64,000 nt of DNA from the sequence record MW879341.1; one strand, 5' to 3'. Numbering within the stretch: the first letter of the stretch is position 1; every line of letters starts with the position of its first letter. The notes below the pieces were generated by a model, which was given only the letters and a program-made list of their open reading frames with translations, was not told the DNA's origin and made no database searches. The position numbers and the translations under genes were made by a program. Below, piece after piece: positions 2,837 to 33,445 of the stretch.

Positions 2837-3259
2837 ATGGAATTTTTAGATCCTGTAACCGGGAAGTGGATTAATTCAAACCGCATTCCCGAAGAGGTCC
2901 GTGAACGTATTGCCGATACCGTGGACTGGGACAGTGAAGAAGCTCGTCACAAAATCACCGGTGACGTAGATATCTTTCACGATTGGGTAAACAACAACTT
3001 CGGGATGCGTGAGTTGAACGAAATGTTGGAACCCGCTGACGGTTCTGAACCGGTAATGCCGGAGGAACCCTTCAAGATCGACCCAGACAACCCTGGATAC
3101 AAGTACCATCAGAAACTCGTGCGTCTCTATCCAGATGCTGAGATTCGTGCCCAGGTTGTTAACGATGCGTTAGAACGCGCTATGGACGGCTCAAAGCATC
3201 TCCCGCCAGATGAGCTGTATGATCCAGACGACGAGGTGGACGACTATCATCAATGGTAA
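2837..3259 (+). CDS. acidic hypothetical protein
   Basis: The ATG at 2837 (MEFLDP) is preferred over the track's GTG at 2732, which lies inside the structured leader. Confidence 0.7.
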   Translation: MEFLDPVTGKWINSNRIPEEVRERIADTVDWDSEEARHKITGDVDIFHDWVNNNFGMRELNEMLEPADGSEPVMPEEPFKIDPDNPGYKYHQKLVRLYPDAEIRAQVVNDALERAMDGSKHLPPDELYDPDDEVDDYHQW

Positions 3260-12445: not shown

Positions 12446-12511
12446 CTGTCTTTCTTTTTTTACAGACCTTGGTGATTGTATGACGAAGTACAAACTGAGG
12501 AATGTAGAAGA

Positions 12512-14632
12512 ATGTTTACACTTGCACGCGAAGAATACACCCGTGACCTGGATATGGTAAAACACTACCTCCACGACGCGGCCACGTATATGGCTACCGT
12601 GAAGGGGTTGCCTTACGACGTCTGTTATGAGCGCATCAAAGAGTCAATTGCTCCAGGCGGTCAGTTTGAAATGAAAGACCCTCGTGTTCTTTACCTGGCA
12701 AAAGAAACCGAAGGGAACCGTGAAGTCTATACCGGTACAATGTCAGACTACCTGAAGACGGTGGCTGAGAAACAATGTATTATGTCGGCTACGATGGCGG
12801 TGTATCTGAACCCAGCTGAGAAACAATCCATGCTGGCACAATACATCATGGGGAACTTACAGAAACGTAAGGACGTTAAGAAGAAAATGTTTGAGTGCGA
12901 TATGAAAGGCGATAAAGCCGGTAAAGCATTCAACAACATCTTGCAGACTACTTATAAGGTAAAGAACAACAGTCTGTCAGGTGCACACGCATCAGCTTCC
13001 ACCCCACTGTTTATTAAGTCAGGTCACTCGACTTTGACCAGTCTGTGTCGTGGTGCCTCTGGTACAGCAAACGCAGCTAACGAACGTTTCATTACAGGTA
13101 ACCGTCACTACTACAACTTGGATATCACGCTTTGGAATATTACGAGCATTATCGCACACAGCGATTATGACAATATCAAAGTGGCTATGGACGAACACGG
13201 TCTAGCCTATCCAACGGTTGAGCAGACTCTGGGTATCATCAAACGTTCTACTGACCTCTACTGGCAGACAGAAGAGAAGATGGAAAGCATTATCCGTCTG
13301 GTTACGGGTATGACTCCTATCCAGCGTGCTGCCTTCTGCTACACTGGCGACTTCTGGCACATGAAAGAGTTCAATGATGCCTTTATGCGTCAGATGATCA
13401 CTACTCTGATTACTAAGCGCGTCTATGATGTCGAAGATGCCAAGTCTGTAATCAAAGCTCTGGATGATGACCAGTTCGCATTGGTTGGTTTGTTCTGTGG
13501 TCCTATCTTGAATGGCTCAACCATTTGGGACGTTGTAGGTGAAGGTGGTGATCGTCTGCGTTATGTGAGTTCAATCGCACACGGCCTGATGGATAACATC
13601 GCGAAGTATGCTTCTATTTATAAAGCATTCTTTGTTACCGCTAACGTACCTGGTTCTCTGGCAGCATTCCCAACGTCTGTTCGCCGTACTGCTATCGTGT
13701 CTGATACAGACTCAACGATCTTTACTGTACAGGACTGGACTACCTGGTTCTCTGGACAGTTAGACTTCTCAGAACAGTCTACTGACGTTGCATCAATCGT
13801 GGTGTACTTTACCTCACAGCTGGTTAAACACTATCTGGCCGTGATGTCTGGTAACATGGGTATTATCCCAGAGAAAATCCACACTGTATCAATGAAGAAC
13901 GAATATATGTTCCCGGTCTTCGCATTAACTCCGCGTGCTAAGCACTACTACGCATGTATGTCAGCGCGTGAAGGTAACGTATACGTCGAGCACGAAACTG
14001 AGATTAAGGGTGTATCCCTGAAGTCTTCTAAAGTACCTGACGAAGTTATGCGTGGGGCTAACGAACTTATCGAACACATCATGGCAACGATTAAGAACTG
14101 TGAAGAGATTGATCTCCAACAGATTCTGAAAGATGTAGCTGATCGTGAGCGTGAGATCGAACGTAGTATCCGTGCCGGTGAAACTCGTTACCTGACTACA
14201 GCACAGGTTAAAGCTCCTGAGTTCTACGCTAAGCCTGAGAGTTCTCCATATGGTCACTACGTCATGTGGCAGGACGTATTTGCTGACAAGTACGGTAATA
14301 CCGAAGCACCTCCGTTCTTCGCAATCAAAGCATCTGTAGCAGCTAACAACAAAACGAAGTTCGCTGATTGGATTGCCAGCATTGAAGATCGTGACCTGGC
14401 ACTGCGTTTAGAAACCTGGTCTCAGAAGTACGGGAAAGAAACCATGACCACGATTATGCTTCCAGCAAGCATCGTCCAGTCCGGTGGTGTACCGAAAGAG
14501 ATCACCGATATCATCGATGTTCGCAAGATTATCTATAACACGATGGAAGCCTACTATCTGATCTTAGAATCGTTGGGTTACTATATCAACGTAGATGACA
14601 GTATTTCAAACCTCATCTCAGATCGCCACTAA
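12512..14632 (+). CDS. family-B DNA polymerase, catalytic (motif B/C) subunit, phiKZ gp50-like
   Basis: YKVKNNSLSG (motif B-like), SDTDS (motif C) and EIKGV. It lacks the exonuclease and motif A, which are encoded at 50896-52593. Start could be the TTG at 12476. Confidence 0.9.
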   Translation: MFTLAREEYTRDLDMVKHYLHDAATYMATVKGLPYDVCYERIKESIAPGGQFEMKDPRVLYLAKETEGNREVYTGTMSDYLKTVAEKQCIMSATMAVYLNPAEKQSMLAQYIMGNLQKRKDVKKKMFECDMKGDKAGKAFNNILQTTYKVKNNSLSGAHASASTPLFIKSGHSTLTSLCRGASGTANAANERFITGNRHYYNLDITLWNITSIIAHSDYDNIKVAMDEHGLAYPTVEQTLGIIKRSTDLYWQTEEKMESIIRLVTGMTPIQRAAFCYTGDFWHMKEFNDAFMRQMITTLITKRVYDVEDAKSVIKALDDDQFALVGLFCGPILNGSTIWDVVGEGGDRLRYVSSIAHGLMDNIAKYASIYKAFFVTANVPGSLAAFPTSVRRTAIVSDTDSTIFTVQDWTTWFSGQLDFSEQSTDVASIVVYFTSQLVKHYLAVMSGNMGIIPEKIHTVSMKNEYMFPVFALTPRAKHYYACMSAREGNVYVEHETEIKGVSLKSSKVPDEVMRGANELIEHIMATIKNCEEIDLQQILKDVADREREIERSIRAGETRYLTTAQVKAPEFYAKPESSPYGHYVMWQDVFADKYGNTEAPPFFAIKASVAANNKTKFADWIASIEDRDLALRLETWSQKYGKETMTTIMLPASIVQSGGVPKEITDIIDVRKIIYNTMEAYYLILESLGYYINVDDSISNLISDRH

Positions 14633-16040: not shown

Positions 16041-18149
16041 ATGGCACTGAAACGTAACGAGTCAGATAAGGCCGACGGGTCTTCTGGCATGGGGTCATTA
16101 GGGGACGCGCTTTTAGAAGCCGCCGCCAAGAAACCAGACAGCGCCGTAGCTGGCGAATTGTTAGCTGGAGGTGAACGTTCACTGGAGTCGGGTAATGCAC
16201 AGGTAATTAACCCAGAGCCTGTAGCACAACCAATCCCAGCGGCTACACCAGTACAACCAGCGCCTACCGCTCGTCCTGTACAACCAGCAGCACCAACCCA
16301 TAACCACAATTCACAAACTTTCGAAAGCAAGGAACAAAAGATGGAACAAGTTAACGCATACTACGGTCTGGACGATTCTTACTCTGGCCTGAACCGTACT
16401 CTGGGTCTGACCTCTGGCGCTGTAGACGTCAACGAGTTCAAGAAGATCGCAGAGAGCATCCTGGAAAACGATCCGGCTGCATCTAAAAGCTCTTACGGCA
16501 AGCCTTCCTTTATTACTCTGGAAGCTGCTGCCCTGGGTCTGCCGTGCAACGCACTGGCGATCGTAATGAACGCACGTAACGGCGCACAGAACGTGCCGCT
16601 GGTTTACACCCTGCTGATGGAACCATCAGAGCCGCTGGCACCACGCGAATACAATGTAGGCAACTACACTGTTGAGCTGAAAGCTGTAACTGGCGATATC
16701 TACGGTGACGACTTCGCTCGTGCTGTGATGAACCACGTTAAGAAAGTGACCAACTCCGATGCCGATCCAATCGACACCGGCGCTAACGTTGTACCGAACG
16801 GCCTGAGCCTGAAGGACGACGAAAACGCAACTCACGTTCGCAGCATCCTGTTCTTCGCATTCGGCGCACTGAACACCGTTTCCGACGTAATGTTCGGTAC
16901 TCAGAAATTCCTGAGCCTGAAAGTGTCTGGCCAACAGCAGCTGCTGGCTAACATCAACTGGTCTGGCAAACAGCTGGAAACTGCTGCGGGTAACCCTATC
17001 CGTGCAGACATCGTGCTGACCACCACCAAGCGTGCTCGCTTCGACCGTAACCAGACTGCTGCACACGCTGCCGCAACTCGTCCGGTAACTGCGCTGGCTG
17101 CGTACATGGACCTGTTCTACGCACCACCGCGTATCGAAGAGAACCCGAACCAGCAGCAGTACGGCTACAGCAGCTACGGTATCCCTGCGGATGCTAAAGT
17201 AATGTGGTACCCACGTATGGTTATCACTCGCTGCCTGCCACTGGGCAAAGTGATCAACGTTGGTGAACTGCTGCTGACTCTGGCGACTGCTACCGTTATC
17301 GGTACCAAGCACACCTGGATCAACGGCTTCCGTCCGGTGCGTGGTCAGGTTGGTATCCACGACATCGGTGGTCTGGGTTGGGAACATGAGTTCGTGAAAG
17401 GCCAGCTGGCTCCTATCGATTCTCAGGACCCTAAATTCAGCCTGCCTGGTCTGCTGAGCCAGACTGTTGTAGACAACCTGTTCTACAGCATGGACATCGA
17501 CGAAGTTGGTGACCTGACCTGGCTGGAAAGCTCACTGCTGGCAATTGCCCGTGGTGGTGAAGAAGCTGCTGCTGCGAACGATTACATCATCGCCGCTGCA
17601 AACGCACTGACCGATAACAAGTTCTCTGAGTGCTACGACGTGACTCAGCCGATTCTGGTTAACGAAGTCGTGCGCGTACACACTGGCTACTACATGGAAG
17701 GTGACCAGAAAGTTGACCTGCGTAACATCGACCACCTGGCAGTCCTGAACATGACCGGTAAGAACGGTTTTGGTCTGGCACAGAAATGGTCTAACGCGCT
17801 GGTAGACTACCCGAACAACAACGCACTGTCTCAGCAGGAACGTCAGAACATCCTGGGTGAGCTGGCACCGAACGCTGTGATCAACGGCTACGCATCTCGC
17901 GTGACCTTCAACTCCGCGTTCCTGTTCGGTCTGGCGTCTGCGATCTCTAAAGCTGGCACCACTCTGGTTGTCAACGACGATGGCCGTCAGGCTACTCAGG
18001 AAGCTCGCGTGACTGCATCTTACGCGTCCTTCGGTCAGGGTAACGTGTACACCACCTCCCTGGTATCTCAAGGTTACGGCAATGGTCAGAACCGTTCTCC
18101 GCGTGCTGTACAGACTCCTGTGTCTGGCAACATCTGGGGCAACATCTAA
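16041..18149 (+). CDS. chmA: chimallin, the major phage-nucleus shell protein (phiKZ gp54 / 201phi2-1 gp105 family)
   Basis: Blocks GNPIRADIVL, HDIGGLG, GYY...DLRNIDHLAVLN and RVTFNSAF match the chimallin family. Sits directly upstream of the nvRNAP beta' gene, with an early promoter, extreme high-expression codon bias and a flexible C-terminal tail. Confidence 0.9.
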   Translation: MALKRNESDKADGSSGMGSLGDALLEAAAKKPDSAVAGELLAGGERSLESGNAQVINPEPVAQPIPAATPVQPAPTARPVQPAAPTHNHNSQTFESKEQKMEQVNAYYGLDDSYSGLNRTLGLTSGAVDVNEFKKIAESILENDPAASKSSYGKPSFITLEAAALGLPCNALAIVMNARNGAQNVPLVYTLLMEPSEPLAPREYNVGNYTVELKAVTGDIYGDDFARAVMNHVKKVTNSDADPIDTGANVVPNGLSLKDDENATHVRSILFFAFGALNTVSDVMFGTQKFLSLKVSGQQQLLANINWSGKQLETAAGNPIRADIVLTTTKRARFDRNQTAAHAAATRPVTALAAYMDLFYAPPRIEENPNQQQYGYSSYGIPADAKVMWYPRMVITRCLPLGKVINVGELLLTLATATVIGTKHTWINGFRPVRGQVGIHDIGGLGWEHEFVKGQLAPIDSQDPKFSLPGLLSQTVVDNLFYSMDIDEVGDLTWLESSLLAIARGGEEAAAANDYIIAAANALTDNKFSECYDVTQPILVNEVVRVHTGYYMEGDQKVDLRNIDHLAVLNMTGKNGFGLAQKWSNALVDYPNNNALSQQERQNILGELAPNAVINGYASRVTFNSAFLFGLASAISKAGTTLVVNDDGRQATQEARVTASYASFGQGNVYTTSLVSQGYGNGQNRSPRAVQTPVSGNIWGNI

Positions 18150-18218: not shown

Positions 18219-19553
18219 GTGGAGTGTAGACAGATGCGAGTAACGGGCATAACGGCCATGATCGATCTGAACGATCTACCTATCGAATACGGTATCTGCC
18301 AAGAGCTGACTGACTTCGATCGTGAGATTGCAGTATTGACATGTTCACCAACCATTGTAAATGACATAGACTCTTCAACTTTAGAGGGAAAGGAGAAGCT
18401 CAATAGTCTACTGATCACGAATTACAAAGGTGATGCTCTACCTATCTTACCAACATGTGACTGCGGTAAATACCAAGGTGAACAGTACGTTGGTACGGTA
18501 TGTGAAGAGTGTAACTTTATGGTTACTTCACCCACTGAGAAACCCATTGAATCGAATGTTTGGATTGCAGCACCAGAAGGCGTACTGGGGTTAATTAACC
18601 CGGCGTTCTGGGCGATGTTCTCTAAACTACTGACAGTGAACAACACCAACATCTTAGAGTGGTGTGTAAACTCCAGTTATCGTGCTCCAGTGGAAAACCT
18701 GCAAGTCTTCGATATCCTGTCCAACTACATCATGCGCGATGGGCAACGATTCAAGCGTGGTCTGAATAATTTCATCGATAACTTCGATGGGATCATTGAA
18801 TTGTTAACTGATGGTAAGACCCTCCGAAACATCGCACCTGCTATGCGCGTTAAGATGCGTGAGTTCTGTGTGATGAACCGTGGGCGTATTTTCTGTCAGT
18901 ATCTACCAATCCCCAACAAGCTGGCAATCGTCATGGAGCATACCCCAACAGGTACATACTCCAACGAAACTGCCGGTGGTACCGCACTGGATGCTGTGCG
19001 TAGTATCGCCAGTATTTATGCAACGGCATTACCCGTAACTGCTACTAAGAAAGAAAACCGCTGCGTATTAGCAACAAAGCAACTAGCGGGCTATTTCTCA
19101 GTACAGTTCACTACCTCGTTAGGTACGAAGAAAGGATGGAACCGTAAACACGGCGTAGGTACACGACAGGACTTTAGTTTCCGTTGTGTTATCGCCAGTA
19201 TCACCGAGCCACACTACTATGAAGAATGTCATCTTCCATGGGGTGTAGCAGTTGGTATCTTTACGGTACACTTGTCTAACTTCTTCCTGAAGCAGGGATT
19301 GGCACCGAATGAGATCGAACGTCGTCTACATTTTGCGGTAACGCATTATGACGAAGAGATCGACGGAATGTTCAAGAAGATCATTGCTGACTCAGATGGA
19401 CTGGGTCCAGCTATCATCCTGAACCGTAACCCAACCCTGTCCAGTAAGTCGATTCAGTTGCTGCAAATCACCAAAGTCAAGACGGATGTCAAAGACGTTA
19501 CTCTTGGTATCTCTGTATTGATTCTTAATAGTTTCAATGCCGACTTTGACGGT
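18219..19553 (+). CDS. non-virion RNAP beta' N-terminal subunit, exon 1 (phiKZ gp55-like)
   Basis: Zn finger CDC...VCEEC, NRNPTL, and NADFDG cut off at the splice site. The start codon is uncertain (18219, 18234 or 18258). Confidence 0.92.
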
Positions 19554-20929
19554 AGAGCGTTGCCGTCGTTAAACGCTTCTAATTGCTGGGAACTCTTGAA
19601 GGTAGCCTAACCACAACGCAATCCGTAAAGGATAATCGTGACGGTTTGAAAATAGGCTATTATGAGACAATCAGCAGCGAAGTCCTTCTTGTATTACCAG
19701 CTGGGTAGGATACTCGGTGAGAGGGATGTGCTCAACGGCCATCGAAAGCACGCAGACGCAATGTCTGTGGAAGCAAGTAGAGTAGGGGAAACCCGAAACG
19801 AAGTGACATGGATGTAAGATATGGTCTAAAGTACGGTGACGTGCGTTGGTGATGTCTGGAAGCATCACCGAAGTCGAAAGACTAAGCTACCAACATGTTC
19901 TATGGAGACACTATGGAGTTAAGAACCATACCCGGTACAGCTGGGTATTCAGCTTCGCGAGACGGTCGGATATTCAACCCTGACGGTATTCAGCGAACTG
20001 AATACACTAACGGGGATGGGTACCTTACCGCATCCGTGAAGTTAACAGATGGTCGATGGCAAACCTTCGGCATACATCGGTTAGTAGCACTAGCATGGAT
20101 AGAATGTCCGGGTAATCCAGACGACTATACCGTCAATCACATCGATACCGATATCACTAATAATGACGTCGATAATCTGGAGTGGGTAACGGCTCAGGTT
20201 AATAACCTACATGCGAGTTTAATGCGGTTAGTTGTGGATAGACCAACAATCTACATGCTCGACGTCGACGGAAGTTATAGCTTCATCGATAACTTGCATA
20301 TGGCAGCACAAGTGTTGTCAGTGGATGTTGGATTGGCTTGGGATATGGTACGTGATGGAATTGAAGTGAATGGGGCTAAGTTATTCCCAATCACTAATCA
20401 CACCGTTCTACCCGACCAACTGAGAAAACCATCAATAGGTAGTGGTGTAGACGCCATACTGGTGGAAGTTCCGGTTAAAGTCAAATCTATCAGCACAGGG
20501 TGCGTTCTGAACTTTAAATCAATGGGAGCGGCAGCAACGCACTTTGGTGTATCTGCTAGCCACATCTATCAGGCAATCTGCAAAGATAGGGTTCGTGTGT
20601 TCAAACGCGACTACGTCGTTGTTAAGTCTGAGGATGAATTCCCAGAAGTGGATGATGCGACAAAAGAGAAAAGTCTGGCAGCTGTGGGTAAGGCTACTTG
20701 GGGATGGAACAGTGTCAGTAAAGTACTGTATGTAACCGATAGCGCTAGCCAACTTATAAAGCTAACTGGCCTCAGTAAGAAAGCGGTAACAACGCGACTC
20801 AAACGCGACGGTTATGGCGAATTGGGTGATTGGATATTTTCATATGAAGATCAGTCCAGTCGAATCTTAGAAAGAATAAAGGGTTCCAGCCCTTCTTGAT
20901 AATGAACAATGTTGGTAGTACATATTCAG
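19554..20929 (+). mobile_element. group I self-splicing intron carrying a homing endonuclease
   Basis: P1: exon GACGGU pairs with GCCGUC (19562-67), with a U-G pair at the splice site. P10: agagcgtt (19554-61) pairs with exon 2 gacgctct. Core elements aattgctgggaa (19581), aatcagcag (19669), P7 ggccat/atggtc and aagatatggtc (19816). Terminal G at 20929. Splicing restores NADFDG|D. Confidence 0.92.
19913..20899 (+). CDS. intron-encoded HNH homing endonuclease (NUMOD4-HNH with C-terminal HTH repeats, I-HmuI-like)
   Basis: IHRLVALAW, VNHIDTDITNNDVDNLEWVT...NNLH. GGAG SD favours ATG 19913 over 19895. Confidence 0.9.
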   Translation: MELRTIPGTAGYSASRDGRIFNPDGIQRTEYTNGDGYLTASVKLTDGRWQTFGIHRLVALAWIECPGNPDDYTVNHIDTDITNNDVDNLEWVTAQVNNLHASLMRLVVDRPTIYMLDVDGSYSFIDNLHMAAQVLSVDVGLAWDMVRDGIEVNGAKLFPITNHTVLPDQLRKPSIGSGVDAILVEVPVKVKSISTGCVLNFKSMGAAATHFGVSASHIYQAICKDRVRVFKRDYVVVKSEDEFPEVDDATKEKSLAAVGKATWGWNSVSKVLYVTDSASQLIKLTGLSKKAVTTRLKRDGYGELGDWIFSYEDQSSRILERIKGSSPS

Positions 20930-24222: not shown

Positions 24223-24624
24223 ATGGAAAGACCCTACCCTAGTCTCAGCACGAAAGGCTGGCTAGAAGATGTACCGGGTGTGTTGGATGCAGTTATGACT
24301 AACTTCTTCCTGACACATCCCTCACTTAGCGTTGAGTTCAAAAACGCTATCTATTCGTTACCCGACCTTATCCAGAAGTACGGTAACAATGAGACTGATA
24401 TCAAGCGTGAAGTCCGTGATGCTATGGAAACACTCTTCAGTCGTTGGTTTGATAAGGTGACAGCAGAATGTAGCGTCACGTACCCAGACCCCGACGATGA
24501 TATCAGGATGAATGTGTCTGTGTATCTCACCATAGACCATAAAGGCGAAACGTATAACGTGGCCCGTGAGTTATCAATGTCCGGGTCTAAGCTAATGAAG
24601 GTCATGGAGATTAATAATGGCTAA
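24223..24624 (+). CDS. conserved phiKZ-like core protein (possibly gp25/baseplate-wedge-like fold)
   Basis: GGAG SD before ATG 24223. The fold guess comes from the alpha-beta pattern only. Confidence 0.55.
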   Translation: MERPYPSLSTKGWLEDVPGVLDAVMTNFFLTHPSLSVEFKNAIYSLPDLIQKYGNNETDIKREVRDAMETLFSRWFDKVTAECSVTYPDPDDDIRMNVSVYLTIDHKGETYNVARELSMSGSKLMKVMEINNG

Positions 24625-25210
24625 GAAACCAGCCGACATGGTGGTCGATAAACAAACGATGGATGCATTGAAGTTCATCGTGGAAGAGACCAAAAAGGAT
24701 ATTCCTCAGATTGGGTATGATCTGTTTGTTCGTGATTACCTCCCACTGTTGGCAGCCCCACCTGAAAGAAACTCAGCGGGTGATATCGTACCGCGCAATC
24801 TGTCATTGTGGATGGAAATCTGTAAGCACGCCTCTAACTCAGTTCAAGTATTGAACCGGGATGGTACAGTGCGCTTCACAGTACCGCCATTGGTAGGTAC
24901 GATTCCAACGTACTACCCGATGCCCCGCACTGGCTTAGCGGCAATTGCCACCGAAGCTCAGTTTAAGAACAGCCAACATCCTGTATTAGGTGAGCGGTTC
25001 CTAAACAACGCCTTGTCCACGTCATTAACGGACCAAGCTCTTGCTAACAAAGCACAGACACTGGAATGGAATAACGTTCTGGTTGAACACGGCTATGAAC
25101 CACTTCCTGGTTACGGCACCTCCATAGTAAAAGCGGGGGAGTCTGTAGCTGCACCAGCGCCGCAAGAACCTCAGCGCGTTATTACGGACGACGATTACGA
25201 TGACCTGTAG
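24617..25210 (+). CDS. conserved phiKZ-like core protein with acidic tail
   Basis: GGAG SD; FTVPPL motif. Confidence 0.7.
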   Translation: MAKKPADMVVDKQTMDALKFIVEETKKDIPQIGYDLFVRDYLPLLAAPPERNSAGDIVPRNLSLWMEICKHASNSVQVLNRDGTVRFTVPPLVGTIPTYYPMPRTGLAAIATEAQFKNSQHPVLGERFLNNALSTSLTDQALANKAQTLEWNNVLVEHGYEPLPGYGTSIVKAGESVAAPAPQEPQRVITDDDYDDL

Positions 25211-26363
25211 ATTCACAAACACCAAAAACCCAAACTACCTGAACATTGCAGAGTTTGCTGATGTTCACTTAGGTCACAATAGAACCACGGCTGAGCACGT
25301 CATTACGTCGATGCATCATGCCCTACCCGATAACCCAGAGACCGCTGCTTTAGACATGATCGTCTACGCGGGTGACGTATTCGACAGACTGATTACGTTG
25401 CCCACGAAAGACGTAGTGACTGAGATCGAAATCTGGGGTATTGATTATCTCAAGCTGTGTAAGAAACATGACATTGTGACTGTTATTGTAGAGGGCACTC
25501 CTCGACATGACCGTAAACAGTGTTACCTGTTCGAGCACCTGAATGATCTTTACAACATCGGTGCTGAGATACTCTATGTTCAGAGGCTATCGGTTGTTAA
25601 GCTGGATAAATTCAACCTGAGCATTCTGTTTGTACCAGACGAATGGCATCCTGATCATCAGGAGACTTATCGTCAAGCAGTACAGGCTATCGCTCAGGCG
25701 GGTATAGACAAGCCGGACATTGCAGTCATGCACGGTGCGTTCGATTTCCAGTTCCCAGCTAACCTCGATATCCCAACCCACGACTCAGACCTGTACTTAC
25801 AGTTAGTGCGTGAATGGATCTTCATTGGTCACGTACACGTACATTCTCGTAAGGAACGTATTCTGGTCTCTGGGTCACTGGACAGACTGACGTTTGGGGA
25901 AGAAGCACCTAAAGGGCACATGCGCGTTAAATGTCGCGGTAATGGTCCAGACGGTGACGAAGTGGTGTTTGTGGAAAACCCGTTGGCGTTGCGTTACGAC
26001 ACGATTGACGTTGAAGGGTTAACGATTGAACAGGCCGTAGAAGATATCCGTGCTAAAGAGATGCCAAAGGGTTCTAACTTACGTTTACTCTGTGCTAAGA
26101 CAGATCCGTCGTTTTTCGCAGAGAAGCAACTCCAGGCATCTTTCCCTAACTTCCGTATCGTAGTTTCTGCTAAGAAGGTAAAAGCTGCTGTAAGTACGCA
26201 AGTCGACCCACTGACACCGCGTCGTCGTGTTACACCAGTGGATATCTCACCAAGCAACGTCAAACGTTTGATGGCTGCCCGTTTAGCTGAACGCGATCTG
26301 TTACCCGACTCACACGCCACTGAGCGTGTGCTGACGCTAATGGACGGTGTAATCAATGGATAA
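25200..26363 (+). CDS. SbcD/Mre11-like metallophosphoesterase nuclease (phiKZ gp65-like)
   Basis: DVHLG, AGDVFD, GTPRHD, MHG and GHVH metal-binding motifs. Confidence 0.9.
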   Translation: MTCRFTNTKNPNYLNIAEFADVHLGHNRTTAEHVITSMHHALPDNPETAALDMIVYAGDVFDRLITLPTKDVVTEIEIWGIDYLKLCKKHDIVTVIVEGTPRHDRKQCYLFEHLNDLYNIGAEILYVQRLSVVKLDKFNLSILFVPDEWHPDHQETYRQAVQAIAQAGIDKPDIAVMHGAFDFQFPANLDIPTHDSDLYLQLVREWIFIGHVHVHSRKERILVSGSLDRLTFGEEAPKGHMRVKCRGNGPDGDEVVFVENPLALRYDTIDVEGLTIEQAVEDIRAKEMPKGSNLRLLCAKTDPSFFAEKQLQASFPNFRIVVSAKKVKAAVSTQVDPLTPRRRVTPVDISPSNVKRLMAARLAERDLLPDSHATERVLTLMDGVING

Positions 26364-27171
26364 CATCCAATATGCTTTGGAGCGTGAGACGGGCGAACTG
26401 CCCGTCTCTATCGGAACGGCGTTGGCCTTTGAACCTGTGTTTATCGCTAAGACATTGGCCCACTACGACATCGTACTGATTAACATCCGAACGATTATCC
26501 GAAACTACTACGCGAGTGTTGCTTCTGCTCGCGTGGATAGTGTGAATCACTCTGCCGCTGCTTACGTGATAGCGGAAGAACTACGCACACTGAGTGAACA
26601 CTTCACCAATGTTACGCCAATCATCTATTATTCCGAGTACGAAGACTTGGGTAAGTATTTACCGGGTTGTCTCGTGAAGACCGACTTTACGGAGAAAGCA
26701 CTGGTTGCTAGAGACCGGGAAGCGCACACGTTGAACTGTTTAGTTACAGAACAGCAAGTCGCTATCCGTGGTTTCAAAGAATGCGCTTTAACCTTTAAAG
26801 AGAAAGGGCGAGCCTTGCTATTTTCCCACATCGCCGTGGACCTGTTACTACGTTATAACTTTACGAAATTTGAACTTCTCGAATCGTATACAGCTGCTAT
26901 CAAACAACGCGAACAATGGAACTCTAAACTTACCAACGGTAAGGCTCTGACACGTATGCCGTTTAATCGGTTCACATTGACACTCTACGGAGATAATGGA
27001 TTGTTGTTGAGACCACAACTAATCCAACTTCGTCGTGCGTTGATGTTGTTGTCTGAGGAACAGGGATGGACCACGGTTACCACGATGGATAAGATAAAGG
27101 CTGACATTCAGAAGATCCCTAACGTAGAATACCGCACGTTGCTGGCAGGGTTGGCTCGACCGTATCTGTAA
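26356..27171 (+). CDS. conserved core protein (phiKZ gp66-like), possible PIN/FEN-like fold
   Basis: Position, plus LPVSIGTALA and NIRTIIRN motifs. Confidence 0.6.
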   Translation: MDNIQYALERETGELPVSIGTALAFEPVFIAKTLAHYDIVLINIRTIIRNYYASVASARVDSVNHSAAAYVIAEELRTLSEHFTNVTPIIYYSEYEDLGKYLPGCLVKTDFTEKALVARDREAHTLNCLVTEQQVAIRGFKECALTFKEKGRALLFSHIAVDLLLRYNFTKFELLESYTAAIKQREQWNSKLTNGKALTRMPFNRFTLTLYGDNGLLLRPQLIQLRRALMLLSEEQGWTTVTTMDKIKADIQKIPNVEYRTLLAGLARPYL

Positions 27172-27230
27172 AAAATCACATGACGGGTCTATGATATAGA
27201 CAAAGTATGGGCCCAAAACCGGAGTGGAAA

Positions 27231-28643
27231 ATGTCCGATAACAATCAACAAAACGGCGAGCGCGCGCCCGCTAAACGTACCATCCTCAGTGAGTTTAAAA
27301 CTCGTCTGATTGGCCGACCTGTAGATGGTGCTAAGAAATCTCCAACCTTCGCTTTCAGTATTAATGAAAAGAACGAAGTGAGCATCACCGTTTACTCGAA
27401 CATCGAAGGTGATCGTGGTAATGGTCTGATTAAAGGTAAGGGTGATATTGGTGTCCTGTTCATGGTCACTACTCTCATTCGTGCCGCAATTGCAACCAAC
27501 GGACCTTTCCGTCGTGTAATCAAACATGAAGATCATGTCTTCATGCGTGGTCAGCGCAGTGAACGTCCGATGTGGATTTTCGATCTGATTATCCAACGTG
27601 ACTCAGGCGATTCAGATGTCCGTATGATTCTGAAGTCGTACAATCGTCCTGACCTGGAGTTCTACTTCCGTCCTACTGACTATCATCGTCTGTACGATGG
27701 TGAAGGTCGTGAACTCAACAGTAAAGAGATTGCTGACTCGTACGCAATCGGTTATTGTGAGATGCTGGAAGACCTGGCCTCTGACCTGCTGAACGATTAC
27801 CAAATCCGTCTGTACGCTGAGACTACTCAGAAGACTGTGGAAGGGCGTCAACCATCTATGGTCTGGGGTAGTATCGCCAACAACCCACGCGGCACTGTCT
27901 TCACTAACGTTGAAGCAGACCAGCACATTAACAAAGGGATGATTGCTGCTAAGATCGATCCACCGACGTTCTACATGTTCTGTGAACTGATGGGTCAAGC
28001 AGTAACTGCACCTCCGGGTTGGCGTCGGGGTATCAAGAACTACGGTCACCAGAAATCTCAAGGTGGCGGTCGTGGTGAGAAAGTCCATGAGACCACTCTG
28101 TGCGTAGGTAAGAACGAGGAAGGTGTGATTTATATCGCAGTCCTCGACCAGGACAAATCGCGTCCTAACCTACAGTTCATTCTGGACTCACACCGTCGCT
28201 TCGCTGTACTGGATGAGAACGAACAACCGTTGGCTCGTTCTCGTGTGACTTCTCTGATGGCTGCTAGCTATAAGAAAGTCTTCGGTCGTGCTGTAGCGAA
28301 ACACCTGAACGCACACTACACTCCGCCAGACCCGTCAACCTGGCAGAACAACAACCAGCAAGGCGGTAATCGTCAAGGTGGTTGGAACAACAATCGCCAG
28401 CAAGGTGGTGGCGGTGGTCAGCGTCAGGGTAATTGGAATAACAATAACCAGGGCGGTGGTCAGCAGCGTTCGCAGGGAAACTGGAACAACAACAACCGTC
28501 AACAGGGCGGCGGAAATACGCAGTACCAGGGTGGTTCTCAGCAGGGTTCAGGCGGCGGTAGTCAGTATAATGAACCTCAGCAGCCGTCTGTACCACCGCG
28601 TAACGATGCGCCTCCTGCATTCGACACCGATATTCCTTTCTGA
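27231..28643 (+). CDS. chmC: ChmC-like phage-nucleus nucleic-acid-binding protein: two tandem domains, N/Q/G-rich tail and SSB-like tip
   Basis: Occupies the gp67 position between the gp66-like and gp68-like genes. Shows internal duplication and a low-complexity tail. The assignment relies on synteny and architecture. Confidence 0.7.
   Translation: MSDNNQQNGERAPAKRTILSEFKTRLIGRPVDGAKKSPTFAFSINEKNEVSITVYSNIEGDRGNGLIKGKGDIGVLFMVTTLIRAAIATNGPFRRVIKHEDHVFMRGQRSERPMWIFDLIIQRDSGDSDVRMILKSYNRPDLEFYFRPTDYHRLYDGEGRELNSKEIADSYAIGYCEMLEDLASDLLNDYQIRLYAETTQKTVEGRQPSMVWGSIANNPRGTVFTNVEADQHINKGMIAAKIDPPTFYMFCELMGQAVTAPPGWRRGIKNYGHQKSQGGGRGEKVHETTLCVGKNEEGVIYIAVLDQDKSRPNLQFILDSHRRFAVLDENEQPLARSRVTSLMAASYKKVFGRAVAKHLNAHYTPPDPSTWQNNNQQGGNRQGGWNNNRQQGGGGGQRQGNWNNNNQGGGQQRSQGNWNNNNRQQGGGNTQYQGGSQQGSGGGSQYNEPQQPSVPPRNDAPPAFDTDIPF
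28335..28570 (+). repeat. coding low-complexity repeat (W-N4-x-Q-GG units)
   Basis: TWQNNNQQGG, GWNNNRQQGGG, GNWNNNNQGGG and GNWNNNNRQQGGG. Confidence 0.85.
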
Positions 28644-28743
28644 TGTAACTAACCGTGTGGCTTCGGCCACACACCTTCCCAACTAAGCGCAAGCACACCC
28701 CAAAACAGAGAGGGTGGTTGAGCACGCTACGAGGAAATTGAAA

Positions 28744-29208
28744 ATGAGTGACGCAGTTGTATTAAAAGCAGTTAAGATGGGTGACGGCAGTTTAATCTTT
28801 AAGTTGCAAGACGACACTGCTGACGGAATGACTTTACATCAATCCGTTAAGACAGCCATCGGTCACCTTATCGCGGGTACCGGCATGCAATTAGGCGGTA
28901 TGACACTTACCACTAAGCTGTACGGTAAGACTGTAGATCCAACCCGCCCTGACGAACCGGTAGAATACATTACACCGGTTGGTCGTACGTGTGATGCCAG
29001 CGCTACTTTCTATACGTTGGCGGGTAGTTTACGTGGTCGCGTTAAACACGGTGCTGAGATTCATTTCATGGTAGATGATCTTACACGCAGTGGTCCCCGT
29101 ATCTTAGATATGGAAGACGTATTCGCGTTCATGAAGAGTCCAGACAATAACAATCTGGTTCTTCGGTCGTTCCTGCATCATCCCGAAGGCTTAAAGTCTC
29201 TGTCTTAA
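28744..29208 (+). CDS. hypothetical protein
   Basis: GAGGA SD before ATG 28744. Confidence 0.65.
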   Translation: MSDAVVLKAVKMGDGSLIFKLQDDTADGMTLHQSVKTAIGHLIAGTGMQLGGMTLTTKLYGKTVDPTRPDEPVEYITPVGRTCDASATFYTLAGSLRGRVKHGAEIHFMVDDLTRSGPRILDMEDVFAFMKSPDNNNLVLRSFLHHPEGLKSLS

Positions 29209-29213
29209 TTGTT

Positions 29214-29239
29214 AGGAGGACTTCGGTCCTCCTTTTATG
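29214..29239 (+). terminator. intrinsic terminator
   Basis: aggaggac-TTCG-gtcctcct followed by TTTATG. Confidence 0.85.
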
Positions 29240-29253
29240 TTGGAGTAACTGTA

Positions 29254-29634
29254 ATGAATGAGTACGATCCCACTACTGCGGTACTGTCCTTTAAGATACC
29301 GTACCATCCTTTGACAGGCACACTGCTACTGAATAAGGTTCAGCCATACACTGAGAAAATCATACGTTCTTATCTGGGTAGACTTTCCAGTCGCGTTGTA
29401 CAAGATGCCATGGTTGCTAACCACACTGGTTTCGCTAGGGCTGTACCTACGTCAGCCGGAACTGAACTACACTACCCGTACGTATTCACGATGGTCTCTC
29501 GTGAGTCGGGTGAACCAATGACACTCAGCGATATCGTTAGATCAGTTCGTGAGTCTTGGACTGTGAACTCAGATAAGTGGCAATTGGTTGCAACACTGGC
29601 AGACGGGGTGCTACGTGCAGATACTACTGAGTGA
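29254..29634 (+). CDS. hypothetical protein
   Basis: GGAG SD before ATG 29254. Confidence 0.65.
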   Translation: MNEYDPTTAVLSFKIPYHPLTGTLLLNKVQPYTEKIIRSYLGRLSSRVVQDAMVANHTGFARAVPTSAGTELHYPYVFTMVSRESGEPMTLSDIVRSVRESWTVNSDKWQLVATLADGVLRADTTE

Positions 29635-29938
29635 AAGGGCTGATACGGGACAGGTACGTAACTCAGCGGCAATCATCGACATTGCCTGTAACTCTCTCGT
29701 GTACAAGATCCCAAACCAAAGTCACCGCTGGTTGTCCTTTGAACAGGTTCAGGCTTTGCATGAGATCGATAAGAAGATAGACGATCGTTTAAAGAAGCGT
29801 CTTTGTATAGAGGTTCCCACAATCGGTGAACCAGATAACCGTAAGGATATCGCCAGATTCATTACTGCTGTGTGTAAGCAAGAAGTAAATAAATACACAG
29901 TAGACGGATATTATAGAAGGCAACAGCAGGGAAAATGA
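29588..29938 (+). CDS. hypothetical protein (start uncertain)
   Basis: Fills the gap and is followed by a hairpin at 29972-30001. Confidence 0.45.
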   Translation: MQHWQTGCYVQILLSERADTGQVRNSAAIIDIACNSLVYKIPNQSHRWLSFEQVQALHEIDKKIDDRLKKRLCIEVPTIGEPDNRKDIARFITAVCKQEVNKYTVDGYYRRQQQGK

Positions 29939-30028
29939 GTTATCTGAAGTCATGGATAACCGCACAAACGATACTCCATCCTCCTAACCGGGGATGGAGT
30001 ATTCATTATTTTCATAGAGGGTTCACGA

Positions 30029-30373
30029 ATGTCTGAAGTCATCGGTGTATTGAAAGTTTCTACAGTCGAATGGGTTGGCAGTCCAGAAGGAACGGTGCCT
30101 GAATGTAGCCCACTGTCACGCGTATGGTCTCGTGAGAATACAGAGGAATCTCGTGCTCAGCTGTTCGATGCAATTGAGAAAGCTAAGATTGAGATTGATT
30201 ACTCGTCTAGCAGTAACGATTGGGTGGATGTTATCCGCACTATTGATGACCGTGTTTCGTACATTCATGGTGGCGATTATCTGGTTATTACAGCTGATAT
30301 GAGGGTCTCCATTCTCTCTGGCGTAAGAGCACTGACCGTGAGCGAAGACGGCGTAGTGAGCGTAGAGTTCTAA
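30029..30373 (+). CDS. hypothetical protein
   Basis: GAGGG SD. Confidence 0.65.
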   Translation: MSEVIGVLKVSTVEWVGSPEGTVPECSPLSRVWSRENTEESRAQLFDAIEKAKIEIDYSSSSNDWVDVIRTIDDRVSYIHGGDYLVITADMRVSILSGVRALTVSEDGVVSVEF

Positions 30374-30432: not shown

Positions 30433-32004
30433 ATGAGAATTTATCCTCTCGATAATTCGAACAAACTTTCAGGCATCGTGTTGGAGCATAATGGTGAGCG
30501 TATAGTCTCTGAGGGGAGCATTTACGACCGCACACCATTTCCTTCTACAGGTGAGCTGTTCATGGACATTAACGCATTCTGGGCAACCTTGAGTGCGGAA
30601 CGTCAGCAGGGTATCTGGAACACGTATAAGGAGATTGAAGAAGCCTTCCTTAATACGTACAACGATTCTCGATTGCACGAGAACGTCACGGCATTAGTGG
30701 CTAAGCTCTATTCGCACTGGTCATATGAAGAACTGTGTAGTTGGGTGAGACTGTATGGTCGAACTGTCATTCCGGTAGAGGTTCAGGATGACATTGGTGG
30801 TTACTCGTCACAAGCGAGAACATACCTGCGTGCAGATTATCAGGGATTAATTTGTCTGGTAGTAGCACTGCGTCCAATGATTCCAATCTGGAACCAGTAC
30901 GTTCGTGAGTCTAAGAAAACAGTAGGTACTCACTTCAAAGAGTATATGGCAATGGGTCTGTTGAATCAGACTACTATGCTGGACACTCCAGAGTTTGACC
31001 AACTGCGTACTTACGTCAGACTGAACGTAGATACAAACAAGATTACGATGTCTGCTATTGTAGCGGGTATCGGTAGTGCGGATTTAGAAGACTGGGTATT
31101 CTCAGTGGTCTTAATTCGTAAGGTGTGCGTGGGTGTGATTATGCACGCAACGCCAGATGGTGAGTTACTGTCGAACTACAGCACGAGTGCAAACATCGTG
31201 TCTAACGTGTACCGACAGATTGAAACTGCGATTGCAAGTCTTGACCGTAAGTTCGATGGTCAGATTCGTAAGAAGCCGGACGGTATGGAGTTCCGTGATG
31301 ATGATAAAGAATCACAAGCGGAGAAGATCATTGTCAAGCAAAAGATCAATGATTATAAATTCATTCTGGCACACGAGTATGCTAAGTTCATTATGCGTGC
31401 GCGTGACCTGATTGATCCCTCCATTCCAAAAGGGTTGATTGACCAATGCATTCGTACTCTGAATGCAAACAAGTCATTCCAACCTACCCAGGCACAAACT
31501 ACACTGGCACAATGGGTTATCCACCCAGCACTGTCAGCACGGTTTGTACCGGCGTTAGAGCAACCAGAGCGTATTAACGTAATGGGCTTTGCGCAAGCAG
31601 CTTATTGGCATTGGGGTTATTACGATCTCGCACTGCTGATGACTGCGGATGCATTAGAGTTAGACCAGGACCAAGTCTTTGGTAATGAGTCACGCTCTCG
31701 TGTAACCAATGAGCAGTTCCGTATTCTGAAAGAGCAGTATCCGCATTACCATCGTCGTGCTGGGAATAAAGGTGAACCCCAGCAGCGCAATGAGAACTTG
31801 GCAACCAATGCGATTGAGTTGATGTATGGAATGTTCGACGGGAAACCGTGGCAGTTCAATGCACCGCAAGATCTGGTAGCACAAACTACAATGCGTCCAT
31901 ACGGTAGTGGTGGTTGGATTATCCCATCCGACATCAAACTCCAACTGGCCGACTTCATTATCACCCTGAACAATAGAAAGAAAGGATTAAAAGATGCTAA
32001 TTAA
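30433..32004 (+). CDS. nvRNAP sigma-like promoter-specificity subunit (phiKZ gp68-like)
   Basis: 523 aa, matching the expected size, in the canonical position before PicA and the nvRNAP beta gene. No sigma motif is directly recognisable. Confidence 0.75.
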   Translation: MRIYPLDNSNKLSGIVLEHNGERIVSEGSIYDRTPFPSTGELFMDINAFWATLSAERQQGIWNTYKEIEEAFLNTYNDSRLHENVTALVAKLYSHWSYEELCSWVRLYGRTVIPVEVQDDIGGYSSQARTYLRADYQGLICLVVALRPMIPIWNQYVRESKKTVGTHFKEYMAMGLLNQTTMLDTPEFDQLRTYVRLNVDTNKITMSAIVAGIGSADLEDWVFSVVLIRKVCVGVIMHATPDGELLSNYSTSANIVSNVYRQIETAIASLDRKFDGQIRKKPDGMEFRDDDKESQAEKIIVKQKINDYKFILAHEYAKFIMRARDLIDPSIPKGLIDQCIRTLNANKSFQPTQAQTTLAQWVIHPALSARFVPALEQPERINVMGFAQAAYWHWGYYDLALLMTADALELDQDQVFGNESRSRVTNEQFRILKEQYPHYHRRAGNKGEPQQRNENLATNAIELMYGMFDGKPWQFNAPQDLVAQTTMRPYGSGGWIIPSDIKLQLADFIITLNNRKKGLKDAN

Positions 32005-33445
32005 ACGCGTTATACTCACCGAGACCGGCACCTACAACGACGTATACAACCGTCCGCATACGACGACTGTTAAAGGTGACACACTCAGCCGCATGCAGCG
32101 ACTCACTGACTCTGGTACTAACTACAGCACTGATGCGCTGTCTGGTGTAGCGGGTGAACTGATGCGTCCGTCGGCTCACGTTGAATCAGCAGTGTTGATT
32201 CCAAACGGTTATGGTGAGGCCCGCTTCCGCTTCATGATGGAAGTTGAATGGCCTATGGTAGGTGGTAATACTCAGGTAGATGTTATCTGTGGTTATACTA
32301 ACTATTGTGGTGTATCGCAGAACAGCAACAACATGGACCCTAACATGCTGTTGAATCTGAATAGCGTCACGAGCATCACCTCATACACTCGCCTGGATAG
32401 CATGAATCGTCCGTATCGTGATATTCACGTACGTGAGTCGAATCAGATCCTGACCAGTTATTTCAATCCACAGCAACAGTACAACCAGTTCTATCTGGCA
32501 CCACAAGACGTGTTCGATGGTATCACGCTGAACAACACGCTGGGTGGTCTGCAAGATGGTCGTAACATCCGTACAGTAGATACTCGCGGTGCATCTATGG
32601 AAGCGCCACGACTGTCACGCCGTAGTAACAACCACGGTGGCTCGTACATGTCACGTACACTGAGTGCGTATCACACGGCATTGCAGAAAGCGTCTGTCTC
32701 TGATGACAACTACGCTAACGTAATGCGCAGTGCGAAAGCGGCAGTAGTCGATACCAATGCGTACGACAACCTCAGTCTGTCTAATCTGTTGCACCACACC
32801 GACATGCAGTACACCCAGACTATCCGTTGGGCTGAACTGCTGCAAATCTGTCCAGACCTGGAGCAGCGTACTACCGTAGCATTCAACCGTGGTGCTCTGG
32901 TTCGTTCTCGTGGTCCAGGCGATGCATTGCCAACTCGTGGTGAAACTGAGCAGTGGGATACAGCAACCAATGAAACGGTTGTTGCAACCATGATCGTTAA
33001 CACCATTCCGACTCTGATGTCTGAAGCCAAGCTGACGCAGATTGCATTCAGTGCAACTAACCAGACCATGGGGACTAACAACGGTACACCGTATGCAGTC
33101 ACTGTGAACGATGCACGTAGTGTGTCTCAGATGTTGGAGATCCAATCGCCATACATGCAGGATAACATCCATGCTATGGTGATGCGCATCGCTACTGAGT
33201 TGATGCCTGCTATCACATTCAACAACCAGATGGCTGCAACCATCACCTGTCGTTGTGATATCATGGGTAATACCCATATCGAAGTTTCACTTAACGGCGG
33301 TCCGTTGATTCCATACGACAACCCACAGTGGAGCGATTCAGCAAGCGCACCAGTTGTTACCATCAATCAGGATAACCGTAAGACGCTGGCTCGTGATATC
33401 AGCAGCATCATGGAAAACCTGAACACCGAAAACTGGGCACAATAA
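31994..33445 (+). CDS. picA: PicA/Imp1 phage-nucleus protein import factor (phiKZ gp69-like)
   Basis: Directly follows the gp68-like gene; N-terminal ETGTYNDVYNRP block; 483 aa. Confidence 0.72.
   Translation: MLIKRVILTETGTYNDVYNRPHTTTVKGDTLSRMQRLTDSGTNYSTDALSGVAGELMRPSAHVESAVLIPNGYGEARFRFMMEVEWPMVGGNTQVDVICGYTNYCGVSQNSNNMDPNMLLNLNSVTSITSYTRLDSMNRPYRDIHVRESNQILTSYFNPQQQYNQFYLAPQDVFDGITLNNTLGGLQDGRNIRTVDTRGASMEAPRLSRRSNNHGGSYMSRTLSAYHTALQKASVSDDNYANVMRSAKAAVVDTNAYDNLSLSNLLHHTDMQYTQTIRWAELLQICPDLEQRTTVAFNRGALVRSRGPGDALPTRGETEQWDTATNETVVATMIVNTIPTLMSEAKLTQIAFSATNQTMGTNNGTPYAVTVNDARSVSQMLEIQSPYMQDNIHAMVMRIATELMPAITFNNQMAATITCRCDIMGNTHIEVSLNGGPLIPYDNPQWSDSASAPVVTINQDNRKTLARDISSIMENLNTENWAQ

Follow-up and report, generated by a model that had tools for sequence, protein, structure and literature searches.

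ChmC, also known as Imp6, is an essential and abundant protein of chimalliviruses that has been tied to mRNA export, to protein import through its binding of PicA/Imp1, to nuclear growth and to DNA content. The name belongs to three proteins, PhiPA3 gp61, phiKZ gp67 and Goslar gp176 (Enustun et al. 2024, PMC11077065), of which that of PhiPA3 is a tetramer with a fold of the Whirly/PUR class (reference complex MRP1/MRP2, PDB 2GJE) that binds single-stranded RNA (ssRNA) at 58 nM and single-stranded DNA (ssDNA) at 184 nM; removal of its residues 204-251 abolishes condensates and shell localization with RNA binding kept (PMC11077065). The same paper describes a ∼15-residue S/D/E-rich 'electronegative cluster' after an N/G-rich region and never mentions SSB, the ssDNA-binding protein of bacteria. 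Knockdown of Goslar ChmC gives small nuclei with less DNA, and a C-terminal deletion of this protein supports nuclear growth and does not rescue the phage titre. The phiKZ protein gp67 is Imp6 and makes direct contact with the import factor Imp1/PicA in a stable complex of ∼2:1 (bioRxiv 10.1101/2024.03.27.586873). Here we analyze the last 64 kb of the 272,635-bp genome record of Erwinia phage pEa_SNUABM_54 (MW879341.1, positions 208636-272635; host Erwinia amylovora), a stretch of 64,000 nucleotides that we refer to as the window, and in particular its chmC gene, an open reading frame (ORF) of 470 amino acids plus stop codon at 27231-28643 on the plus strand, whose product ends in ...PSVPPRNDAPPAFDTDIPF*.

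Short acidic C-terminal tails with defined partners have been described in several single-strand-binding proteins. The tip of SSB (SSB-Ct, DDDIPF) is bound by about 20 partners as well as by the oligonucleotide-binding (OB) fold of SSB itself, and such tips are highly conserved (PMC8509808). In T7 gp2.5 the acidic tail, whose terminal Phe is essential, attaches to a basic patch of the phage DNA polymerase (PMC12339929). In WHIRLY1 a Glu-Trp pair at the C-terminus touches a Whirly-domain Lys, and ssDNA binding is reduced by it (PMC9070903). We find that a tip of the SSB-Ct type is, as judged from sequence comparison, the norm in the ChmC family and a previously unremarked hallmark of it.

The SSB-Ct-type tip of ChmC proteins

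Searches with tblastn connect the 470-residue protein to PhiPA3 gp061 (E 6e-11), phiKZ gp067 (PHIKZ067, E 3e-9) and Goslar gp176 (E 7e-12), in agreement with an earlier note made from the letters of the window, which had called the protein ChmC-like. It is matched by phrog_3284 (E 2e-51, best over residues 185-415), and a Pfam scan of the full chain returned no family at E ≤ 1, the bacterial SSB family PF00436 included. With homology, a Whirly/PUR-like fold, the conserved gene block and a disordered N/G-rich tail with an acidic segment all present, we take the protein to be a true ChmC/Imp6 orthologue with a duplicated core. It departs from the ChmC norm of one Whirly-like unit per chain (about 250 amino acids) in having two, an architectural variant that leaves family membership unaffected. 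The identical GenBank counterpart (100%, locus_tag pEaSNUABM54_00286 of MW879341.1) is labelled 'hypothetical protein'. We favor the ATG at 27231 as start over an in-frame ATG at 27207, because a GGAG lies 8-9 nt upstream of the former and homologues begin MSD.... A megablast search with the gene across 50,697 phage records yielded no close relative (roughly ≥85% identity); the metagenomic relatives of the gene number about 10.

The last seven residues, FDTDIPF (residues 464-470, window 28620-28640, plus strand), form an acidic/hydrophobic tip in which six of the seven positions are identical to the end of a Klebsiella SSB chain, 7F2N. Of the 302 stop-to-stop segments in the window, one closes in an acidic hydrophobic-Pro-aromatic end. 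A scan of the complete phage record in six pieces gave one such end among 1353 segments, and no second SSB-like tail was found elsewhere in that record. We searched 1.84 billion cluster representatives with a profile, obtaining 1,277 ChmC family members at E ≤ 1e-3 (1,027 at E ≤ 1e-10), and surveyed the ends of the best 150 of these 1,277, each standing for one cluster at 50% identity. In 82% of the 150 an acidic run leads into a hydrophobic-Pro-hydrophobic end. Position -1 is F in 64%, M in 13%, L in 7% and W in 7% (together 91%), position -2 is P in 83%, and position -3 is I in 53%, L in 23% and F in 13% (together 89%); further in, D is found at -4 in 72%, D or E at -5 in 65% and 17%, D at -6 in 56% and F at -7 in 19%. 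The last ten residues contain on average 3.4 D/E and 0.05 K/R.

Among the duplicated-core relatives the SSB-like end is kept in 11 of 11, and F/Y-D-x-x-I-P-F in all eight of the double-domain homologues from the first search; the single-domain homologues carry close variants of this motif. The share of tips is flat with score rank (38, 47 and 38 per 50), and a hidden Markov model of the domain only recovers 150/150 of the sequences after their last 70 residues have been cut (worst E 6.5e-28), so that the tip did not drive the family search. Taken together, the pattern suggests that the tip is under purifying selection across the ChmC family. The earlier note had proposed an SSB-type tip for this one protein; the tip is indeed there, and its retention among orthologues bears the proposal out, with the amendment that the tip belongs to the family at large and is no peculiarity of this one member.

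Among cultured phages the canonical end is less frequent than among the metagenomic representatives, being found in 5 of the 11 examined, pEa_SNUABM_54 counted. RP12 ChmC ends in ...SSDDIPW, LucasX in ...GDDDIPM, FLC9 in ...GSEDLPF and AgentSmith (Bacillus) in ...FDTDVPM. The proteins of PhiPA3 (...FDDEIPNF) and phiKZ (...FDEDMPSF) each have one extra residue before the last Phe, RSF1 (...DFDDISF) has Ser in place of Pro, and in Goslar (an E. coli phage, ...AFDGLAF), 201phi2-1 (a P. chlororaphis phage, ...ELASFDW) and Eowyn (a Klebsiella phage, ...DDDVWG) the Pro and/or the terminal Phe are gone. A full-text literature search for ChmC together with SSB gave nothing relevant, and recent reviews are silent on an SSB-like end; the likeness may have been overlooked because the tips of phiKZ, PhiPA3, Goslar and 201phi2-1 are atypical.

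In the double-domain clade the likeness to SSB is not confined to the tip. When phmmer was run against the PDB with the full protein and with the last 40 amino acids, 7F2N, identified as the SSB of Klebsiella pneumoniae via PMC8509808, was returned in both cases at non-significant E-values of 0.72 and 0.84. The search with the last 40 residues gave three matches in total (PDB E-values of 0.39-1.9), one of which, a low-complexity prion-protein chain, was set aside and not used. A tblastn search with the last 34 residues in the same 50,697 phage records gave nine non-self matches, and all nine are C-termini of annotated SSB genes, from five phages and one shared SSB lineage (E 0.9-5). The best of these, gene 73 of Klebsiella phage F14, encodes a bona fide PF00436 SSB (E 3e-39), and its tail and that of pEa_SNUABM_54 ChmC align colinearly over ∼35 residues with a local score of 83, as compared to 27.8 ± 5.4 for composition-preserving shuffles (0/5000 reach 83). 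With the last seven residues removed the score is 53 against 28.9 ± 5.3 for shuffles (4/5000 reach 53), a pre-tip score that none of 155 single-domain ChmC proteins examined attains. The shuffle figures overstate significance, since F14 was chosen as comparator for being the best database match; the sounder evidence would seem to be that all the matches are SSB ends and that the alignments are anchored at the free C-terminus.

Members of the clade share 5-6 of the last seven residues with Klebsiella SSB, and the two most divergent of them, P0008 and P0082, share 10 of the last 14. The mean number of prolines at positions -20 to -8 is 3.0 in the double-domain clade versus 0.7 in single-domain ChmC. 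We conclude that the SSB likeness apparently runs ∼25-35 residues into the tail in this clade. The layout that the earlier note had read as that of SSB-Ct, a disordered linker with an acidic I-P-F tip, is thereby upheld by the residues shared with 7F2N and by phage matches that are SSB ends without exception. The possibility that the tail was recently taken over from an ssb gene was considered, and no sign of this was seen: the DNA is identical to the 3' end of F14 ssb at 44 of 62 positions, which is what the protein likeness alone would lead one to expect, leaving ancient capture or convergence.

Duplicated core and disordered tail

An AlphaFold2 (AF2) model of the full-length protein, built with 19 homologues, shows two folded units, residues ∼17-186 and ∼190-372, for which the predicted local distance difference test score (pLDDT) is mostly about 80-96, followed by a disordered region (residues 374-470, pLDDT 25-44). 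Both the model and the ORF translation thus agree with the two tandem domains, G/Q/N-rich linker and FDTDIPF end of the earlier note, the linker being about 75 residues long. Unit 1 (residues 17-186, window 27279-27788, plus strand; pLDDT mostly 79-94) is the more diverged copy of a Whirly/PUR-like domain, with an isoelectric point (pI) of 5.9, and unit 2 (residues 190-372, 27798-28346, plus strand; pI 9.4) is the canonical ChmC-like copy according to PHROG, AF2 and Foldseek. A BLASTP match (E 3e-8) shows the two units to be homologues of one another, the single cores of the PhiPA3, phiKZ and 201phi2-1 ChmC proteins align with unit 1, and both halves of the query align to one ∼180-residue region in several single-core relatives, those of PhiPA3 and phiKZ included; the ChmC core has therefore been tandemly duplicated. 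This architecture is rare, found in 4 of the 150 family representatives and in 11 proteins in all.

The fold of unit 2 was examined with a model of the fragment at window 27771-28355 (residues 181-375, pLDDT 86.7). The top Foldseek matches in the PDB are Pur-alpha repeat I-II (5fgp_A, probability 0.94) and T. brucei MRP1/MRP2 (2gia_B, probability 0.97, template modelling (TM) score 0.50), the top matches having probabilities of 0.87-0.97 with E-values of only 8e-3 to 6e-2. In BFVD the fragment matches ChmC-sized proteins of the Klebsiella phages Eowyn and Miami and of Pseudomonas phage EL at E 1.6e-12 to 1.9e-7, the best being Eowyn ORF067 (E 1.6e-12, TM 0.72). Foldseek with the full-length model gave only noise, with a best probability of 0.75 (PURA). 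Basic equivalents of PhiPA3 K30, R44 and R63 are all retained in unit 2, and only those of K30 and R63 in unit 1. A strand signature of other ChmC cores, V-G-[RK]...I-Y-I-A-V-like, is also gone from unit 1. Nucleic-acid binding may have given way to a different role in this unit.

The linker (residues 374-447, window 28350-28571, plus strand) is a disordered N/Q/G-rich segment with W/Y and R that contains no D/E and five K+R (pLDDT 25-44), and its counterpart in PhiPA3 ChmC is the N/G-rich region that drives condensates (PMC11077065). A proline-rich pre-tip (residues 448-463, EPQQPSVPPRNDAPPA; 28572-28619, plus strand), colinear with the pre-tip of SSB of the enterobacterial type, connects it to the tip. 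The last 90 residues together comprise 21 G, 18 Q, 16 N, 7 P, 6 R and 3 W. Tandem Repeats Finder detected no array in the linker DNA, so the peptide repeats of the linker are not recent DNA repeats. The linkers of very divergent ChmC proteins (P0009-P0019 and family representatives) share a repeated unit of the type aromatic-N-N-N-R-Q-G-G-G in which the aromatic residue is W or Y, and which resembles the aromatic/arginine 'stickers' of phase-separating proteins.

The closest described relatives, ChmC of PhiPA3, phiKZ, Goslar (gp176) and 201phi2-1 (gp123), thus share with the pEa_SNUABM_54 protein a common core, fold and gene neighborhood as well as an N/G-rich disordered region with an acidic end. 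They differ from it in several ways. Its core is doubled, giving 470 amino acids as compared to about 250, and its unit 1 is acidic and has lost most of the basic residues that were mutated in PhiPA3 Kmut/Rmut. Its linker is longer, and Q- and W-rich. Its tip is a near-canonical SSB end, whereas theirs are inserted (...IPNF, ...MPSF) or degenerate. What is new here is the SSB-Ct-type tip as the ChmC norm, the clade with a duplicated core and, within it, a tail that appears to be like that of enterobacterial SSB over ∼25-35 residues.

Of the features of bacterial SSB (PF00436) the disordered linker and acidic tip are present and the OB-fold domain is absent; lacking both an OB fold and a PF00436 match, the protein is not a member of the SSB family. 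Like SSB, ChmC is an oligomeric single-strand binder with a disordered G/Q/P-rich linker, a proline-rich pre-tip and an acidic I-P-F tip, and the linker supports phase separation in both, according to papers on E. coli SSB and to the work on PhiPA3 ChmC. Unlike SSB, it has a Whirly/PUR-like core and a linker that is N-rich with W/R, and published ChmC prefers RNA. T7 gp2.5 has in common with it an acidic tail with a terminal aromatic residue, but gp2.5 is an OB-fold monomer/dimer that has neither a long G/N/Q linker nor a Pro-Phe end and is unrelated in sequence. T4 gp32 is another acidic-tailed phage SSB. Plant WHIRLY proteins combine a Whirly-class fold and ssDNA/RNA-binding tetramers with an acidic-aromatic C-terminal pair (Glu-Trp in StWHIRLY1, PMC9070903), although sequence similarity to ChmC is undetectable and the plant motif is not one that closes the chain behind a long low-complexity linker; no plant WHIRLY entry is among the 50 Foldseek matches listed. 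The doubled core is a new architecture for the ChmC family that has a parallel in the two-OB-fold dimeric SSBs. SSBs of the Deinococcus-Thermus group contain two OB folds per chain and form a dimer with two tails in place of a tetramer, so that the binding unit is tandemly duplicated in both cases; theirs is an OB fold and the likeness is one of analogy only.

What the tip may do

We lean, with slightly better than even confidence, toward an explanation in which pEa_SNUABM_54 ChmC joins a duplicated Whirly/PUR-like core to an SSB-style tethered tip for docking and autoregulation, acting as an SSB-like hub. The C-terminal ∼95 residues have the build of an SSB C-terminal domain. A disordered sticky linker, of the kind that drives condensation in PhiPA3 ChmC, leads into a short linear motif held on a tether, in which acidic residues precede hydrophobic-Pro-aromatic and the carboxylate is free. 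This motif would work in the manner of the SSB, T7 gp2.5 and plant WHIRLY tails. The partners of the tip would most likely be components of the phage nuclear machinery, PicA/Imp1, polymerases or the RNase H-clamp protein Rhc for example, on which it would dock into a basic/hydrophobic pocket; it would also compete with nucleic acid for the basic surface of ChmC itself, here mainly that of unit 2. A dimer of duplicated chains would present four units, like the ordinary ChmC tetramer, with two tails and not four. ChmC would in this manner serve as an SSB-like hub for single-stranded nucleic acid, certainly for mRNA and plausibly for ssDNA.

Phage partners are more likely than host ones to receive the tip. 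Its drift in phages that infect E. coli, Klebsiella and Pseudomonas points, as regards the general partner, to a co-evolving phage receptor, or to the ChmC core, and not to invariant host pockets. The PicA/Imp1 orthologue (window 31994-33445) is our candidate for the tail receptor, and the notion that the protein might license import, raised in the earlier note, finds an independent echo in the published binding of gp67 to Imp1/PicA, in which the tip itself might have a part. What made Rhc attractive as the receptor was that SSB has RNase HI among its partners in E. coli, alongside a pull-down of Goslar Rhc in which ChmC, polymerase subunits and PicA were recovered. We retain it as just one candidate among others, given that the tip of Goslar is degenerate and that a published AF2 screen did not bring out gp67.

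A number of points weigh against the docking and hub explanation. In the screen just referred to, where phiKZ Rhc was paired with every phiKZ protein, gp67 did not come up, and the co-purification of Rhc and ChmC may therefore have been bridged by nucleic acid. In our own full-length AF2 model the tip is given no defined position (pLDDT about 30), so that a stable docking within the chain is not predicted, and single matches between the tail and SSBs are non-significant database-wide (E 0.4-5). The degenerate tips of Goslar, Eowyn, 201phi2-1 and RSF1 imply that some lineages can do without the exact motif. The phenotypes of the published deletions cannot be assigned to the tip because linker and tip were removed together, and the published data stress mRNA over ssDNA, ssRNA being bound about 3-fold better (PMC11077065).

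As regards the single-strand-binding role, no bacterial-type OB-fold SSB was found in the phage genome with one SSB query (best E 0.7), a search that is blind to gp32-type, gp2.5-type, novel or divergent SSBs, which likewise tempers the explanation. In a survey of jumbo phages an OB-fold SSB is listed for T4-like groups only and none for phiKZ-like ones (Iyer et al., PMC7824862). With no bacterial-type SSB either detected or listed, a general role of ChmC as a single-strand-binding hub is plausible if unproven, as is the suggestion of the earlier note that it acts as the phage's own SSB, and ChmC becomes a candidate for a function that comparative genomics has left unassigned in phiKZ-like phages. 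A bolder version, in which ChmC is the missing single-strand-binding hub, its tip organizes the replication, transcription and import machinery at the shell, and the duplicated, Enterobacterales-associated clade also plugs into the host SSB interactome so as to select host genome-maintenance enzymes for recruitment or import, strikes us as rather improbable.

The alternative that survives best, though we judge it unlikely, is mimicry of host SSB, in which the tail captures host SSB partners (RecQ, ExoI, PriA, Topo III, RNase HI, UNG, Pol III chi) and recruits, imports or titrates them. The extension of the likeness beyond the tip in the double-domain clade (5-6 of 7 residues; 10 of 14 in P0008 and P0082) is what such mimicry would produce, as are colinear pre-tip scores that exceed those of shuffles (4/5000) and of all 155 single-domain ChmC proteins examined, and non-self matches of the tail in the phage database that are all SSB ends. 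Erwinia, moreover, belongs to the Enterobacterales, as does Klebsiella. The tips of Goslar, Eowyn and 201phi2-1 are nevertheless devoid of Pro and/or terminal Phe, and RSF1 has Ser for Pro. The Pro-to-Ser change of E. coli ssb-113, at the same position, cripples partner binding. Further, 36% of the 150 representatives end in a residue other than Phe, as opposed to the highly conserved bacterial tips (PMC8509808), and the portion of main text devoted to the PhiPA3 ChmC pull-down names ribosomal proteins, RNA polymerase (RNAP), ChmB and phage RNAP subunits and no host SSB partner. Import of host TopA into the phiKZ nucleus, with ChmC/Imp6 found in the import complex, might be cited in favor of mimicry, but that import was mapped to Imp1 and Imp3 and not to gp67 (bioRxiv 10.1101/2024.03.27.586873). 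The earlier note, in which the protein was thought to mimic or replace SSB-Ct, is partly supported when its interpretation is taken as a whole.

Less likely again is the published view of the end as a non-specific 'electronegative cluster', the charge of which raises solubility and tunes RNA specificity and condensates with no docking site involved. Electronegative clusters that suppress non-specific RNA binding are cited in PMC11077065, the last ten residues are nearly free of K/R with a mean of 3.4 D/E, and the degenerate tips of several cultured phages stay acidic in spite of having no Pro-Phe. Charge leaves unexplained, however, the Pro at -2 (83%), the I/L/F at -3 (89%) and the F/M/L/W at -1 (91%), as well as the fact that almost every member has the motif fixed to its free carboxyl terminus; because uncharged residues are conserved in a position-specific manner at this free end a purely electrostatic role is disfavored. 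Finally, that a low-complexity tail should end like SSB by accident of composition, as the non-significant tail searches (E 0.39-1.9 for the PDB, 0.9-5 for phages) could be taken to mean, is refuted by the conservation survey and can safely be set aside, with one such end in 1353 phage segments against 82% of 150 diverged family members, a tip share that is flat over ranks and independent of the query tail, and a tail-to-tail score about 10 standard deviations above shuffles.

If the tip is indeed a docking motif of the SSB type it would provide a handle that can be tested by structure, the question being which pocket, on a phage or a host protein, takes it. The atypical tips of the best-studied phages argue for work on a member of the family with a canonical tip.

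Gene neighborhood and other acidic ends

The genes that surround chmC are those expected of a chimallivirus. A gene for chimallin (ChmA), the nuclear-shell protein, lies at window 16041-18149 on the plus strand (phrog_4795 'nuclear shell protein', E 9.5e-85), and its presence establishes pEa_SNUABM_54 as a member of this group. A DNA polymerase gene (12476-14632) and, at 18219-19610, a gene for an nvRNAP (non-virion RNA polymerase) subunit belong to the conserved block upstream of chmC. Two genes upstream of chmC is that of an SbcD/Mre11-like nuclease (25200-26363, plus strand; phrog_100, E 3.3e-48), and directly upstream a gene matching phrog_3229 (26356-27171, plus strand; E 2.9e-60) occupies the position of phiKZ gp66 and PhiPA3 gp60, a correspondence based on gene order and similar size only. 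Downstream are orthologues of phiKZ gp68, an nvRNAP subunit (30433-32004, plus strand; BLASTP E 2e-51, phrog_3209), of gp69, Imp1/PicA (31994-33445, plus strand; BLASTP E 6e-45, phrog_3141), and of gp70 (BLASTP E 9e-36). In the fetched stretches of MW879341.1 all features but one (thymidylate synthase) are annotated 'hypothetical protein', including clear ChmA, DNA polymerase, nvRNAP subunits, PicA/Imp1 and SbcD.

The same gene order is seen in a metagenomic relative, L012 (200 kb), whose syntenic ChmA gene has the Pfam domain PF25677 Chimallin and in which genes of 387 and 271 amino acids precede a ChmC of 464, matching the order of the SbcD-like and phrog_3229 genes. The chmC and gp68-like genes are adjacent in phiKZ, PhiPA3, Goslar and 201phi2-1, and six small genes lie between them in L012. 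In pEa_SNUABM_54 they are separated by four small ORFs (28714-30373, plus strand), two of which were scanned and gave no PHROG or Pfam match. Just after the nvRNAP gene at 18219-19610 there is a gene for a 334-residue HNH endonuclease (19895-20899, plus strand; phrog_59, E 3.7e-32) that looks like a mobile homing-endonuclease insertion; the syntenic stretch of L012 has no gene of this size.

Two further ORFs of the window have acidic ends. One, of 197 amino acids (24617-25210, plus strand; phrog_34423/phrog_5171), overlaps the start of the SbcD-like gene, ends in ...ITDDDYDDL and is possibly a further protein with an acidic tail in the replication/recombination block. The other, of 140 amino acids (2837-3259, plus strand), has an acidic/aromatic end, ...DDEVDDYHQW.

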